In this document: piece after piece, positions 5,197 through 51,452 of the stretch
Numbering within the stretch: the stretch's first letter is position 1
How the letters are laid out: each line of letters opens with the position of its first letter
The notes under the pieces: model-generated
Told to the model about the DNA's origin: nothing
Database searches by the model: none
What the model saw: only the letters and a program-made list of their open reading frames with translations
NCBI GenBank assembly: GCA_946965045.2
Contig: OX337238.1
Span: 682,001 to 746,000 of the forward strand
DNA from: Epithemia pelagica
Lineage: Eukaryota > Protista > Bacillariophyta
Reading direction: 5' to 3'
DNA: 64,000 nt
Position numbers and translations under genes: made by a program

Positions 5197-6166
5197 TTAC
5201 TGGTATTCTTCAATGAGTTCTTGAAGCCGTCCTGGATTGGCTCCCATGAGTCGTTCGACAACTTCACCACCCTTGATAAAGACAAAGGTTGGCATGGCGG
5301 ATACATTGTATTCGGCCGCCGTATCCGGATTCTCGTCCACATCCACCTTGAGAAACACCACATTGTCGTAGGATTCGCTCAATTCTTTAAACTATATAGC
5401 ATTCGCCACAGGACACCAAACAAACAACGAAATGGCACGCATCCAGAGAGACACCAAACAACAAAAAATGAGAGGCGCAACAGCAGGGACCGTACCGACA
5501 CACAACTGGCGAAACTCCGGTTGTTGGAAGGATACTCTCTGTCCACAATCAGTCAATGAAACAAGGATTCAAAGGCGCGACTCCAACACATTTCTTGACA
5601 AAAGACATGGCATTTCACCGAATGCCATATATCTTTATGAAAATGCTCGCAAACTCGAAACAACCATGGACGTACCAGAGGTGCAATCATCTTACATGGT
5701 CCACACCATGTCGCTGTTGAGAAAGAACATCAAAGCGTACAACACACAATGAAAAACAGACAGCCAACCAGTCAGAGAGAGAGAGAGAGAGAGTGACCCA
5801 TTCACGTAAAAATCCACAATCGCAGAAGAAGAAGAATGTACCTGTAAAATCAATCACCACCAACTTTTGTTCGCCACCAGCCTTTAACAACAGAGCCTTG
5901 ACGTCATCGAGTGATGCCGGTTCCTCCACAGCACCGCCACGCATACTGAGCACTGAAGGAAGACGTTGACTCACACCAAACAAGCTAGTAGTTGTGGCTG
6001 TAGATTGAGAGGGAACCTGGTGTCGATCATCATCATTATTTGTTCGACAGGATTTGGGGACCGCCGAAGGAGGTTGCAGCGGAGGTGTGGCCTTCACTCC
6101 AATGGTGCATGAGGTCAGAACCAATAATAGCAGACAAACGGAAACACGAGAAACCATGCTGTTCAT
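5197..6166 (-). CDS. Thioredoxin (h-like) with N-terminal signal peptide; complement join(5197..5391,5676..5713,5842..6166), 185 aa
   Basis: GT-AG introns 5841-5714 and 5675-5392 assemble [41 protein letters not shown]...MPTFVFIKGG. Hydrophobic N-terminus, then an S/T-rich linker ending SMRGG. Confidence 0.93.
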
Positions 6167-20040: not shown

Positions 20041-20570
20041 ATGCTAATTGATTGTATCTATAGAGGTCAACAGTTTAAGCTACAGTTCTACCTGTTACGA
20101 GCCACTGCTACGAGTGTCATCTTGTCGACGTTGCGGACCATCAGGATCAGGCGCAAAAGGCAATTTCGCGATGTTCCATTGAGCGATTGTGATATGTGTA
20201 CTGAAATACAATATGAGTGCCAATCGAGAGATATAAGGGCTTCTGCTTTTATCGTATACCAATATGCTATTATCAATACCACATGCATCCTGGTCAGCAG
20301 AACGAACGAAGAAAAACAAAATTCATAATATATGCTTTCCTAGTCAATTTATAATTCTTTGTTGCTGTATGATGATAATATGAATTTAACTCTGCCGTTG
20401 TAGCGATTCATGCCCGTTATCGAACACAGCAATTCTCTCTAACGTCTTGCTACCTGTTCCTACGAGCTTTCAAACAAAAAGTCTTGTTTCAGTCATTCCA
20501 GAACGGTTGGGCGTCTTACATTACTAGTAGAGATTCGTCAAGGGTAAGTCCCCACTCACATTTTACGCGG

Positions 20571-46304: not shown

Positions 46305-48288
46305 GGAGCAGTTGGTGATGGTTGTCACTCTCGTCCCGCACTTTTTTTGTTTTGTGTGACCGTTTCTGGAAACTGAAAACTGATTCCGATTGGATGGGTT
46401 CTGAAAATTATGTGGGAGCGACGTTATCACGAGATGCGCCAACTGCTCTCGTCCAACGGCACATAGGGAGCATATCTAAAGATGTGCGCCGGCCCAACTC
46501 ACTCCCAAAGAATATTACCAAACCTTCGAAATAAGTGTAATGTACCGCTACTTATGAATCCATAGTGGGCTTAAACCATAGTGTGTGACAAAGACTAAAT
46601 CTGAACGAGCTGCGCAAAGACGGTCTTCTTATGAGCGCGCGAAACACTTGCGCGGATTCAATTCGATCGGTTTGGTTTTCGTTCCCAAGTTCCAACTCTA
46701 GTTGGCACGTGCACTACCTAAACTTTAAAATCAACTCTCAAACCTCTCTTTAGAAAGAGTCAATTGTAAAGTCGATCCCAACTCCCAACAACAGCACGAC
46801 AGAGCACCTACTCCTAATTCTCTACCAAGGTACTCCCGGAAAGGAAACGTTGGTGGTAGAAGGAACCAAGCCAAGAATAAGGAAGTTCTTGTGCGAGAAG
46901 GAAGTAGGGACCCAAGACCCAAGCCGTGGAAGTAGAGAAGCTACTCCTATTGATAGACTTGAGACTTGAGACATGGATACACATCAAAGAGATCATACAA
47001 AGGAGACAAATATGCACATACGGGAGTACATACTTTTCATCGAGCACTTCTTTCTACCTACGGTAGGATAGTGTGTTGGATGTTTTGACGTTTGGTTGGA
47101 TGTCTTGGAGTTGGATGCTCTCATGGTTCATCGCGCACGAGCAGCGCACGTGCGATCAGACAAACAAAAATGAGTCCTGAATATTTTGGTTATGCCCTAT
47201 ACAACTCGCAGCTCCCCCAAACCGAATCGTCCCCCAAAAGTTGATAAAACGCACAACGGCCCACTTTTACAAGACTGAAATTTCCACGCCGACCGAGCTA
47301 ACTTTTGGATCAATCACAACCATTATCAGCGGGAAGCGGGAAGCCGAACCCACGACGGATCCTGGGATTGCAAAATTGGAGTGATTGGCGTTGACGGTTG
47401 GCGGTCTTTGCCAAAACACGCAGGCTTCATAGATGGACATTGCGATTTAATTTTTGGATCACATGAGAGGTTTACTGCTCAACGAGATGAAGTTGGAGTT
47501 GGTTCGATCTGGGATCATAGGTCTTTAATCAATCGACAAACGCGCTCTCACCGGTGCGCAACAAAAACAAAGACTCATGATACTTCTTCCCGCAGGACTG
47601 CACGTTGCGTGTCCTGTTCAGCTCTTAAGTTCCCTACAACAGTGACCTTCGCTTGAGCCAAAGATCTTTGGTTGTCAAGTTTCGGCGTCAATCGTCGCGA
47701 GAGCCGAAGCCCCCGTTCGGTTCTTCCCTATCGCAACGCCTTCTTTAATGTTGACACTGCGTCTCCTCGCGTCGGGGGGCAATGGAAATGTTGATCCGTA
47801 CTGATGGAAATTTCATCCGACGAACTATCCGCATTGAGCTTTGCTGCAAAGGTATTATTTATTATACTCAATTAGGGTCAGACCAGGGTCTTGATTCAGT
47901 GGAAAGTTGGGAAGGTCGTCAAGCACGGGGTTTCAGTAGCATACCGGACTAGAGAATTCGAAATAGAAGATCGAAAAAAGGCAATTGATTGTTTCGGACT
48001 ACGTGTATTGGGCACGTCCTTCCTATTACTGCAAAATCGTAGCCTTCATCCAACAGTGACTCGTCTTCTTGACGCTCGAGCAGTTCTTTTGGAACTCATG
48101 TGAAGACGCTGTTCAAATGTGGCATGATGGTAGCTTGTGCACATAGTCTGCCTCGAAGTTTTCGGTTGCTTTTCGGCACAAAAATGAGGTGTGACGATCC
48201 CTACTAAGGTTAGGGTTTAAGGCAAAAGATACGAGATTTGCCTACATATATCGCACAAATCTTTTTTGGGTGTTGCACCAGAATCATC

Positions 48289-49116
48289 ATGTTGGTCCGA
48301 TCTCTGTTGTTCACAATCGTCTTATCGGTGGTTCTCGCCAGTAACCCGTACTCGTCGAACGTTGTGGAATTGACGGGCCGCAACTGGCGTCAAGAAGTCG
48401 AAGAGTCACCCCACGGCGTTTTGGTGAATATTTGTCGACAGGGCTGAGGCTACTGTCAGCGGCTCCAACCGGAATGGGAACGGTTGGCTGCCGCCGTCAA
48501 GGGAACCATCAAGATAGCCTATTGGGATACCGAACAAGCGTCACGGCGTCCGACGCTGTTGGGAGAAATCCAGGGCACACCGACGATTCGATTTTACAAA
48601 CCCAAACCGAAACAGGGTCCGAGTAACACCAAGAAAATTGTACAAGATTATCAGTACGAGCGGAAAGCTACCGAGATCAAAAAGTGGTTGGACAATCAAA
48701 TGCCATCCTTTGTAGAAGCGATTCGGGGAACGGCAGGTTTGACCAAGTTTCGTGAAAAGGCGGAACGCAACGGCTTGCCGCAAGTCCTTCTCTTTACCTC
48801 CAAGGCCAACACTTCGCCATTGACGAAATACCTGAGTACCGAATTTCGTCGACGACTGCTTTTGGGGGAAATCTATCCAACCAAGACGAATCAAGAGCTA
48901 TTGAAGGAATATGATTTGGTGGAGAACGAAAATTTGCCCGCCTTGTTTGTCATTCCGGTGAACGGAACCGAGCCGGTGCGGTACGAAGGAGAGGGCTTCA
49001 ATCGCATGAAGTTGCACAACTTCTTGGCCACGCATGCCCTCAAGACACCGGTGGCTCCCAAGAAGAAGGAAGAAAAGGAAGAAACAAAAGAAAAACCTGT
49101 CCACACCGAGTTGTAG
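48289..49116 (+). CDS. PDI-like thioredoxin-fold selenoprotein (UGYC active site; TGA 48445-48447 read as Sec), signal peptide and C-terminal HTEL, 275 aa
   Basis: ORFs 48238-48447 and 48484-49116 share one frame: VVELTGRNWRQEV...VNICRQG-TGA-GYCQRLQPEWERLAAAVKG...EIQGTPTIRFY. The TGA sits at the first Cys position of the CxxC motif. No GT donor is present to splice it out. Confidence 0.88.
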
Positions 49117-49238
49117 GAGTCTGGTAACGTGGAGCATTCAATATGAGTGTCGGAATGACGGACTTATCAAGTCCCGAACTAGTTGTGCAAGTCATGCTGG
49201 TGTTTCCCTTGCGTCCAACATGTCGCACGATGTTGATC

Positions 49239-49320
49239 ACTCGTTGGAAGAATCTGCGTGAAAGGCTGCTATCGCGAAGTATAAATAGAGAAATAGTAAT
49301 CATGACTTGTTTCTGCGAGT
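49239..49320 (+). promoter_or_regulatory. Tentative SECIS-like hairpin in the 3' UTR of the selenoprotein gene
   Basis: By-eye fold: GUGAA (49258-49262) opposite UGAC (49303-49306); lower helix ACUCGU/GCGAGU; upper helix 8 of 10 pairs. The apical AA is 15 nt from the core (canonical ~11-13), so the fit is imperfect. Confidence 0.3.
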
Positions 49321-49885
49321 CCCCGCTATGCTCTTCTTGATTGAACGTTTCTTGTCCTTGTTCTTCACGTGTATTTTGCGCTTCTCACTACACTCTTCGA
49401 TCCGTTTTTTCACAAAATGTTGGATGAGCAGCTGAACAAATGTAAAGGGAGTATGACGGACAAGTACCATAGTCCGAGCGATGTGGTGGCGTTGGCATGT
49501 GGTGGTATTGATAGCTGGGGATGCGCTGGAACCACCAGTAGGAGATCCACAAGATCTCCGTATTTATACAAAGCAAAGAGCAATCGCTTTGTCTGCATCG
49601 TCTTTCGAGGCCGGGGTGACGGATCGAAGATCCTCAAGGTGAACAAGTCGGTCGAAACGACTACGAATTCAATGGCGCGTACAATGGGAAAAGGACCTAG
49701 ATAGTGCCCACTAAAGCGGGCGCTCTGTGGTGAAAAGCTCGGCGGCTGGCCAATACTGTATCTTTCATCAAGATATCCTCACAAAGTTCACTCTCTAATA
49801 ATGTATCTATGAAATCTTTTGAATCCAACCAGACGTTGGAGTATCCTGGAAGGTGTTTGTCTTTACGCGGTTCCGAAAGAGCCAT
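49300..49885 (-). pseudogene. Disrupted coding remnant immediately downstream of the racemase-like gene
   Basis: MALSEPRK...WLDSKDFIDTLLESELCEDIL...RRAFHHRAPALV, a frameshift near 49690, then RFDRLVHLEDLRSVTPASKDDADKAIALCFV*IRRSCGSP...CQRHHIARTMVLVRHTPFTFVQLL (TAA 49564-49566). Family not recognised. Confidence 0.5.
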
Positions 49886-49893
49886 GATCACCG

Positions 49894-50937
49894 TTACTTT
49901 TGTTGTCTCTTTTGTTGTTGTTGTCGTTGTTCTTCCTGCACGGAAATGAGCAATTTCCGTTCTTCCTCGGTAAGATTATCACCCAATGTATATACCTGTT
50001 GCAAGCCGTTGAACTCCTCTTGCCAGGCATTCAAGCCAAATCGGGGATTGTCCAACAATCCTTCAATAAACATATTGGAACACGTAATGGCATCGTAGAC
50101 CGGCAGGCCCGTCGCATGACGAATGTCGTCCGAAAAGGGTGGCAACTGGGTACATTCCAACAAAAAGGCTCGCACGTGCGGATTCTCCTGAACCACGCGT
50201 TGCGCCAATGCCACAATCCCCGGTCGGACGCGTTCCAAATCCAATTGTGCCGCCACCGCTACGGCCTCAAAACCAGGCACGTCCTGACAACCGACCATTT
50301 CAAATCGTTTGCTGTCACACCGAATGCCACATTCTTCCTGGATCAAGTCGTACATGGGTTCCAACGACTGCAGATCGGCGGTAAAAATGGCAATTTGTTC
50401 TCGTTTCGAATAGGCCGAGACAATACTGGGTAGCTGTACCAAACTGCTCATAAAGACTGGTTTATCCGTGTGTTGTCGAGCCAAATCTTGAAACCAAAAC
50501 ATAAAGCCACAATCACCCGTAATGGCCGAAACACCCTGTGTCTGGTCCAGCCACACGACGGCATCAATAAAGGCTTTGCGAACGGCTGGCGTCAACTGTC
50601 CAGACTGACACATTTCAAAAGTGAGTCCAGGGACAGCCCGATAAAAGACACCATAGTTGAAACTGTCGGGTGAATCAATATCACCGGGAGCGGGTGGATA
50701 ATTGTAATCCAAGCGAATGACACCCAAGGTCGCATGCGCCCTTAAGGCACGAGCGCGAGGGGAGTCTACGACGGCCTTGAACAAGAGCTTTCGAACATTG
50801 AATCGTTGTAGGATTCGAAAGAGTTGATTGGTATCCCCACTCGTGTTGTTGTTGCTGGTTGGTGCACTGTGGTTGGACGTGGTGGTCGACGTGGGTCGGT
50901 GGTTGTTGCCCGAGTCTGTACTTTGAGAGCATCCCAT
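49894..50937 (-). CDS. Aspartate/glutamate/hydantoin racemase-family protein with N-terminal MGC acylation motif, 347 aa
   Basis: LGVIRLDYNYPPAPGDID, AITGDCGFM, PVFMSSLVQL, LLECTQLPPFSDDIR..TGLPVYDAI (two catalytic Cys positions). ATG 50937 gives MGCSQS. Confidence 0.8.
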   Translation of the reverse strand: MGCSQSTDSGNNHRPTSTTTSNHSAPTSNNNTSGDTNQLFRILQRFNVRKLLFKAVVDSPRARALRAHATLGVIRLDYNYPPAPGDIDSPDSFNYGVFYRAVPGLTFEMCQSGQLTPAVRKAFIDAVVWLDQTQGVSAITGDCGFMFWFQDLARQHTDKPVFMSSLVQLPSIVSAYSKREQIAIFTADLQSLEPMYDLIQEECGIRCDSKRFEMVGCQDVPGFEAVAVAAQLDLERVRPGIVALAQRVVQENPHVRAFLLECTQLPPFSDDIRHATGLPVYDAITCSNMFIEGLLDNPRFGLNAWQEEFNGLQQVYTLGDNLTEEERKLLISVQEEQRQQQQKRQQK

Positions 50938-51452
50938 CCTTCCAGAAAAATGGGAATCCACAACAGTCTATTGTAATGAGAAGAGTCGTAGGTCGTAGCT
51001 TCAGTCTTTTGTATCTTTGTTTACTGGATGCACACAAACAAGGGGATGCGTCGCATTGCTTTGTTCCAAGATATTTTGGTTGAAGAAAGATGAGGGTATC
51101 TTTGTTTCTCCAGACTCCCCTATCACACGTACAGACTTCCGTAGCGTTGGTAGATCGGTCCCGTGTGGCAAGTTGCAGATGGCGGATTTTCCCAACCTTA
51201 ATAGCGATCGAAACGCGAATTCCGATAACGACACAGCTCCGCACCACGCGAAGATACAGGCAACTTGCGTCATCCCTTCTTTTCCATCAAACTGCAAACA
51301 AAACAACGACGAAGAAGGTGTTGACTAGGTAGACAACAACGAGAGGCCCTTGGTATCCAATCATTCATTCCATCCAACAAGACGTGGTGTGTGTTGCTTC
51401 CTTTGCTCCCCTCCTCTTGACAGACAGACAGCATACCACAAACAGCCCTCCT

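Follow-up and report, generated by a model that had tools for sequence, protein, structure and literature searches.

The question raised by this locus is whether an in-frame TGA, lying inside what otherwise reads as one gene for a PDI-like protein, terminates translation or is read as selenocysteine (Sec). The gene lies on the forward strand of the 64-kb stretch of DNA analyzed here (the window), which corresponds to C11:682001-746000 of a 60.5 Mb genome assembled in 23 contigs, and it is single-copy in that genome. Translation yields a single frame of 275 codons, from the ATG at 48289 to the TAG at 49114-49116, whose sole break is the TGA at 48445-48447 (codon 53), found in the context NICRQG*GYCQRLQPEWE; the frame ends in HTEL-TAG. 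A mechanical ORF list cuts the gene into two pieces, 48238-48447 and 48484-49116, which are in the same frame, just as a preliminary description of this DNA had noted. The same description had proposed that the UGA at codon 53 is recoded as Sec. This proposal is supported by four lines of evidence: the Sec/Cys column in orthologues, a SECIS shared by the family with a homologue in this gene, the Sec machinery of the genome, and purifying selection downstream of the TGA. Judging from these comparisons, codon 53 very probably specifies Sec in an ER PDI-like protein.

The placement of the TGA within the protein fold is precise. In a whole-genome profile search that read through stop codons, the PF00085 Thioredoxin profile was matched over positions 2-101 across the TGA (43.8 bits, reported with ‘1 TGA’), delineating a catalytic thioredoxin (a) domain at 48361-48690. 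When the pieces on either side of the TGA were searched separately, the 3' piece matched Pfam Thioredoxin from profile position 31. The TGA column is the first Cys of the thioredoxin CxxC, where the motif would read U-G-Y-C, and in PDB alignments of P0003, an orthologue that naturally has Cys here, this column falls opposite the initial Cys of the CGHC motif of TXNDC5 and PDI, i.e., the nucleophilic position to which the TGA had originally been assigned. No other Thioredoxin match in the whole-genome profile search contains a TGA. Matches that start right after the CxxC were considered as further Sec genes and rejected, as they are ordinary Cys exons behind introns. Elsewhere in the window, 5209-5418 (-) is an exon of a thioredoxin gene (WCPV...AMPTFVFIKGGEVV) without a Sec codon, and a TAG within this match suggests an intron.

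Using the downstream piece as query, a word-based protein search identified 225 relatives. Most originate from marine metagenomes, metatranscriptomes, and MMETSP diatoms, and the whole set falls into four kinds: (i) proteins of ~280-300 amino acids with C at the column (CRxGCGYCQ); (ii) proteins of similar length (~280-300 amino acids) with a ‘W’ at the column; (iii) calls of ~200-230 amino acids that begin just past the column; and (iv) the public models of Nitzschia inconspicua (P0095) and Cylindrotheca closterium (P0100), whose aberrant N-termini avoid the column and which look mis-spliced or mis-started. Inspection of the transcript-like contigs L001 and L002 showed that the ‘W’ is TGA in the DNA. 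The truncation or mis-modeling by gene callers that had been anticipated for this gene is thus seen in the two aberrant public models and in the window's own call, P0001, which is a 210-amino acid fragment.

We scanned metagenome contigs and obtained 80 loci, and the G-x-GYC...EWE motif could be located in 73 of them. At the column, 72 of these 73 environmental loci have TGA and the remaining one has TGT, with sequence identity down to ~35% and conservation on both flanks of the codon. Cys occupies the column in six database orthologues (P0003-6, P0009, and P0011). The preliminary description had named TGA or Cys at this column as the pattern to look for in orthologues, and this is what the comparison returned. 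Finding the same codon in 72 of 73 related loci indicates that the position of the TGA is not due to chance, and a TGA/Cys column with conserved flanks is, at the level of sequence, the classical Sec/Cys signature. The PDI-like family is very widespread in marine metatranscriptomes, where Sec is used almost always.

A rival explanation is a bypass of the UGA that involves no selenium, by near-cognate read-through (inserting Cys, Trp, or Arg) or by removal of a small intron. The frame is colinear with the orthologous transcripts L001 and L002 and has no sign of an intron, in agreement with the unspliced frame originally described, so that 48289-49116 is a complete, intron-less coding sequence of 275 codons plus the stop. 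Two GT...AG pairs are present, at 48429-48446, which cuts through the TGA, and at 48429-48464, which removes it; however, the intervals of 18 and 36 nt are too short for an intron, and the longer one deletes the active site. Moreover, the TGA is retained in the mature mRNAs of relatives (the orthologous contigs L001 and L002). The weakness of the SECIS, described below, is in line with a selenium-free bypass, but the genome has the Sec machinery and other Sec genes, and this explanation leaves the conserved SECIS core without a role. We consider it highly improbable.

The gene product reads as an ER thiol-disulfide oxidoreductase in which Sec would be the attacking residue. The N-terminus is hydrophobic, with a predicted ER signal peptide (MLVRSLLFTIVLSVVLAS) encoded at 48289-48342, the boundary being approximate. 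The alignments of orthologues are conserved from NP(F/Y)SSNV onward. At the other end, the codons at 49102-49113 encode HTEL, a putative KDEL-like ER retrieval signal; orthologues terminate in KVEL, HTEL, HTEF, or xxEL, with a nearly invariant penultimate E. The C-terminal -EL is conserved across orthologues, consistent with the KDEL-like reading that this tail had been given. Between the a domain and this tetrapeptide, orthologue matches and modeling place a non-catalytic thioredoxin-like (b) domain followed by a lysine/glutamate-rich tail (48691-49101).

The natural Cys orthologue P0003, which is 65% identical, was used for modeling with AF2 on an alignment of 18 sequences (pLDDT 74). The P0003 model has two thioredoxin-like domains and an N-terminal helix, and its best Foldseek matches are a-b fragments of rice OsPDIL2-3, yeast Mpd1p, QSOX1, and ERp44. 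Orthologues also have weak Thioredoxin_6 and ERp29_N matches, and sequence matches were found to the a domains of PDIA6, PDIA3, and TXNDC5. Read from the model of this orthologue, the predicted architecture is the a-b arrangement of the PDI family with a b domain present, and both the PF00085 a domain and the a-b matches bear out the PDI-like assignment made at the outset. The matches to PDI-family folds have Foldseek E-values of about 5e-11 to 2e-10 and low TM-scores of 0.34-0.42, because the relative orientation of the domains differs or is uncertain. Yeast Mpd1p, rice PDIL2-3, and PDIA6/P5 resemble the window protein in having a-b architecture with one CxxC, and also in the signal peptide and ER retrieval tail that are predicted for it; unlike it, they use Cys where the window protein would use Sec, and the identity is only 14-18%. 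The gene would therefore encode, if the UGA is read as proposed, a presumably ER-resident two-domain (a-b) member of the PDI family with a U-G-Y-C site and an attacking selenocysteine.

Proteins of this kind are known. EhSEP2, a PDI-like selenoprotein of Emiliania huxleyi, was reportedly described by Obata and Shiraiwa in 2005. It has one thioredoxin domain with a UGHC motif, in which Sec was proven by 75Se labeling (PMC6254913). Compared by description, EhSEP2 and the window protein share an origin in a marine alga, a single catalytic thioredoxin domain, and Sec, proposed in the window protein, in the first position of CxxC; they differ in the residue preceding the Cys, which is His in UGHC and Tyr in UGYC, and the SECIS of the window gene is much shorter than normal. 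Similarly, two PDI selenoproteins were reported for Thalassiosira pseudonana (PMC2375036), so that the earlier statement that UxxC PDI-like selenoproteins occur in marine algae is well founded. PMC7539508 catalogues subfamilies PDI_a to PDI_e across algae and counts 20-44 selenoprotein genes in diatoms. Like the window gene, the PDI selenoproteins of diatoms and green algae are Sec-containing homologues of PDI found through a Sec/Cys column and a 3'UTR SECIS; a truncated SECIS, as seen in the window gene, is not described in PMC2375036 or PMC7539508. Since PDI-like algal selenoproteins have already been described in E. huxleyi and diatoms, the window gene is a further member of a known group and its novelty is modest. 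Its main value lies in correct annotation.

The Sec-decoding machinery, for which we surveyed tRNA-Sec, SepSecS, and SelD/SPS2, is encoded in the window's own genome. Two genes for tRNA-Sec, each with a TCA anticodon, scored 77 and 74.6 bits, and SepSecS and SelD/SPS2 are present as well. The latter gene, three GPx genes, and SelM each have a TGA at the canonical Sec site. In the mechanism that we propose, the UGA at 48445-48447 would be decoded by tRNA-Sec during translation, directed by a SECIS in the 3'UTR.

The other Sec genes of this genome are of some interest in themselves. The SelD/SPS2 gene (G000:C11:775690-776631, L121) is located ~30 kb past the end of the window and has an in-frame TGA (LKG*ACKIP) and a SECIS of normal size (gaAUGAc, 42 nt, then uGA). 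Two tandem glutathione peroxidase genes occupy G000:C16:777981-779757 (-) (L124-L127), with TGA at their active sites (NVASK*GLT and NVASY*GLT); the two 44-nt SECIS differ hardly at all, suggesting that a selenoprotein gene was duplicated here in tandem not long ago. A SelM-like gene at G000:C2:6190975-6191202 (-) (L131, CSG*ALNKYPQL) is followed by two good SECIS-like hairpins, ~150 nt apart, in its 3' region.

Does the gene have a SECIS? In the window region, the Rfam SECIS models (SECIS_1, RF00031, and related models) gave no match up to E = 10. With permissive thresholds, Rfam 15 likewise detected no SECIS in three orthologues (L084, L001, and L002) or in Sec genes of the same genome (L121, L125, L127, and L131). 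As Rfam misses all of these positive controls, its negative result for the window says little, and Rfam-based annotation will miss diatom selenoprotein signals. A generic scan for AUGA..AA..GA ranked unrelated hairpins, and the element was recognized only by comparing the 3'UTRs of orthologues. This comparison revealed the pattern gaAUGAcGGyC...GrCC(u/c)GA in 61 of 67 Sec-form 3'UTRs, mostly 40-150 nt past the stop codon. When 36 such elements were aligned, pairing in the lower stem amounted to 95%, and each of its five base pairs showed compensatory changes. From this alignment we built a covariance model (R1), which scored 15-34 bits on the held-out Sec-form loci that it matched and 28.6 bits on the closest orthologue, L084. 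By contrast, R1 found no element downstream of four Cys-form genes (L003, L163, L164, and L165). Thus, the presence of the SECIS tracks that of the TGA. Along with the real SECIS, the loci L017 and L018 have the sequence ATGACGGACCTGA ~485 nt past the stop codon and ~360 nt downstream of that SECIS, in which the two halves of the SECIS core abut with no hairpin between them.

Searched with R1 on both strands and with filters off, the 64-kb window has its best match at 49147-49185 (+), beginning about 31-38 nt past the stop codon of the PDI-like gene (19.9 bits, E about 0.02), a score inside the range of the held-out true elements. The layout of this homologue is ggaAUGAc, GGACUU-AUC-AAGUCC, cGAac, with core AUGA at 49155-49158 and GA at 49176-49177. 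Its stem consists of 6 bp (49160-49165 with 49169-49174) closed by a triloop or, alternatively, of 4 bp with a 7-nt loop containing AA. This mini-hairpin preserves the lower stem and the kink-turn core, 5' and 3' halves alike. What sets it apart is its length: the inner distance between the core halves is 15 nt, versus 26-107 nt (median 43) in 47 distinct orthologous elements, 26 nt in the nearest orthologue, and 39-44 nt in the SPS2, GPx, and SelM genes of the same genome. The SECIS that the preliminary description expected is therefore present as a homologue of the family element, which is atypically short; no canonical SECIS was found.

Compared with the canonical eukaryotic SECIS (RF00031, SECISearch3), the window element shares its place in the 3'UTR, the AUGA...GA kink-turn core, the stem directly above the core, and AA in or near the loop. 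It differs in that helix II, canonically of roughly 9-14 bp, comprises 4-6 bp, the distance from AUGA to GA is 23 nt, and the 3' core is CGA. The consensus of the SECIS 3' core is KGAW, usually UGA or GGA (PMC3753652); CGA also occurs in the family loci L044, L048, L051, L056, and L069. With 15 nt and 6 bp, the window element is below the usual limits for the length of helix II and the apical loop. SECISearch3, which the preliminary description had suggested running on this region, discards candidates in which helix 2 is too short (PMC3753652) and would probably report nothing for this element.

We propose that the family SECIS homologue past the stop codon has kept the kink-turn core (AUGA...GA) and the lower stem and would have lost the upper helix found in all relatives. 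It can be put forward only tentatively, at slightly less than even odds, that the 23-nt element at 49155-49177, in which the kink-turn core surrounds a stem of 4-6 bp and a very small loop, functions as a minimal SECIS. We know of no shorter eukaryotic SECIS. If such an element works, the recoding machinery of diatoms could do without the greater part of helix II and without the canonical apical loop, a new lower bound would be set for what a eukaryotic SECIS needs, and the failure of standard SECIS finders on such genes would be explained. A genome-wide pattern search for the family core returned 34 matches versus 13 in the control and is too noisy for finding other mini-SECIS.

The mini-hairpin breaks the known length rules, and Sec might instead be inserted with the help of another SECIS: a longer hairpin at 49143-49231, an element further downstream, or one created by splicing of the 3'UTR. 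An irregular hairpin of 80 nt, closed by AUGA (49143-49146) and CGA (49229-49231) and engulfing the mini-hairpin, can be drawn at 49143-49231 with a constrained fold of -17 kcal/mol, and it is also the MFE structure of 49139-49236. However, this speculative fold is no better than that of shuffled sequence (z = -0.7) and has no counterpart in orthologues, and the context of its AUGA is auAUGAg as opposed to the gaAUGAc that is the norm in this genome. Further downstream, a pattern scan detected a second look-alike of the SECIS core at 49453-49480 (+), where ATGACGGAC is followed by a 10-nt loop and then GTCC-GA; it was rejected as a SECIS, being absent from the R1 matches (the weakest match listed has 7.3 bits), and is probably due to chance. 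Both conserved halves of the core, 5' and 3', sit in the mini-hairpin, which also argues against an element elsewhere. A different SECIS is hence a possibility that we regard as real but doubtful, less probable than the minimal element itself. A convergent ORF at 49894-50961 (-) leaves less than 780 nt for the 3'UTR of the selenoprotein gene; this ORF has a weak match to Asp/Glu/hydantoin racemase (24 bits, below the cut-off).

The short hairpin could also be read as the mark of a selenoprotein gene that was recently disabled. In this case, the upper helix of the SECIS would have been lost to an internal deletion, translation would now end at UGA 53, and the gene would be decaying into a pseudogene. 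The hairpin is indeed far shorter than the 47 distinct orthologous SECIS and the genome's own SECIS. Shortening of helix II abolishes function in mammalian SECIS, which counts for a loss of function here as well, as does the filtering out by SECISearch3 of elements with too short a helix 2 (PMC3753652). Evidence on the other side comes from sequence variation. We aligned to 48150-49750 the contigs of three public DNA runs of the same organism and of one related metatranscriptome. Over this interval, the aligned contigs are free of joints, and neither the TGA nor the mini-hairpin varies. Among close haplotypes or strains, 19 coding sites differ; 13 of the changes are synonymous, and 15 affect the third position of a codon (P = 6e-5), which corresponds to a pN/pS of about 0.14. 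Along the same lines, the DNA haplotypes that have the same short hairpin show 10 coding differences, eight of them synonymous (pN/pS about 0.07-0.14). The two RNA contigs, from a slightly divergent close relative, span only 48469-49142 and stop short of both the TGA and the hairpin.

Selection on the protein encoded 3' of the TGA has thus persisted for as long as the hairpin has had its current shape. This speaks against a dead gene and, by implication, for a SECIS of some kind being functional in the mRNA. Additionally, the frame is open both before and after the TGA, and the genome contains neither a second copy of the gene nor a Cys paralogue that could take its place. The SECIS of the closest orthologue is already short, at 26 nt, which suggests a trend of the lineage over an accident in this gene. 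We find a disabled gene unlikely, somewhat less so than a selenium-free bypass, and favor the reading of UGA 53 as Sec. A stunted SECIS in a gene still under purifying selection may interest specialists.

Two minor observations concern the window outside the gene. From 49212-49314 onward, the DNA runs contain two haplotype contigs, one identical to the window through 49704 and the other with seven differences up to 49314 and unalignable beyond; this pattern suggests that the DNA separating two convergent genes has undergone an indel or a rearrangement. The second-best R1 match in the window, at 20481-20504 (-), scores 15.9 bits; here, too, one core half follows immediately on the other (GGAAUGAC|UGAAAC), leaving no room for a stem, and the match may be due to chance.
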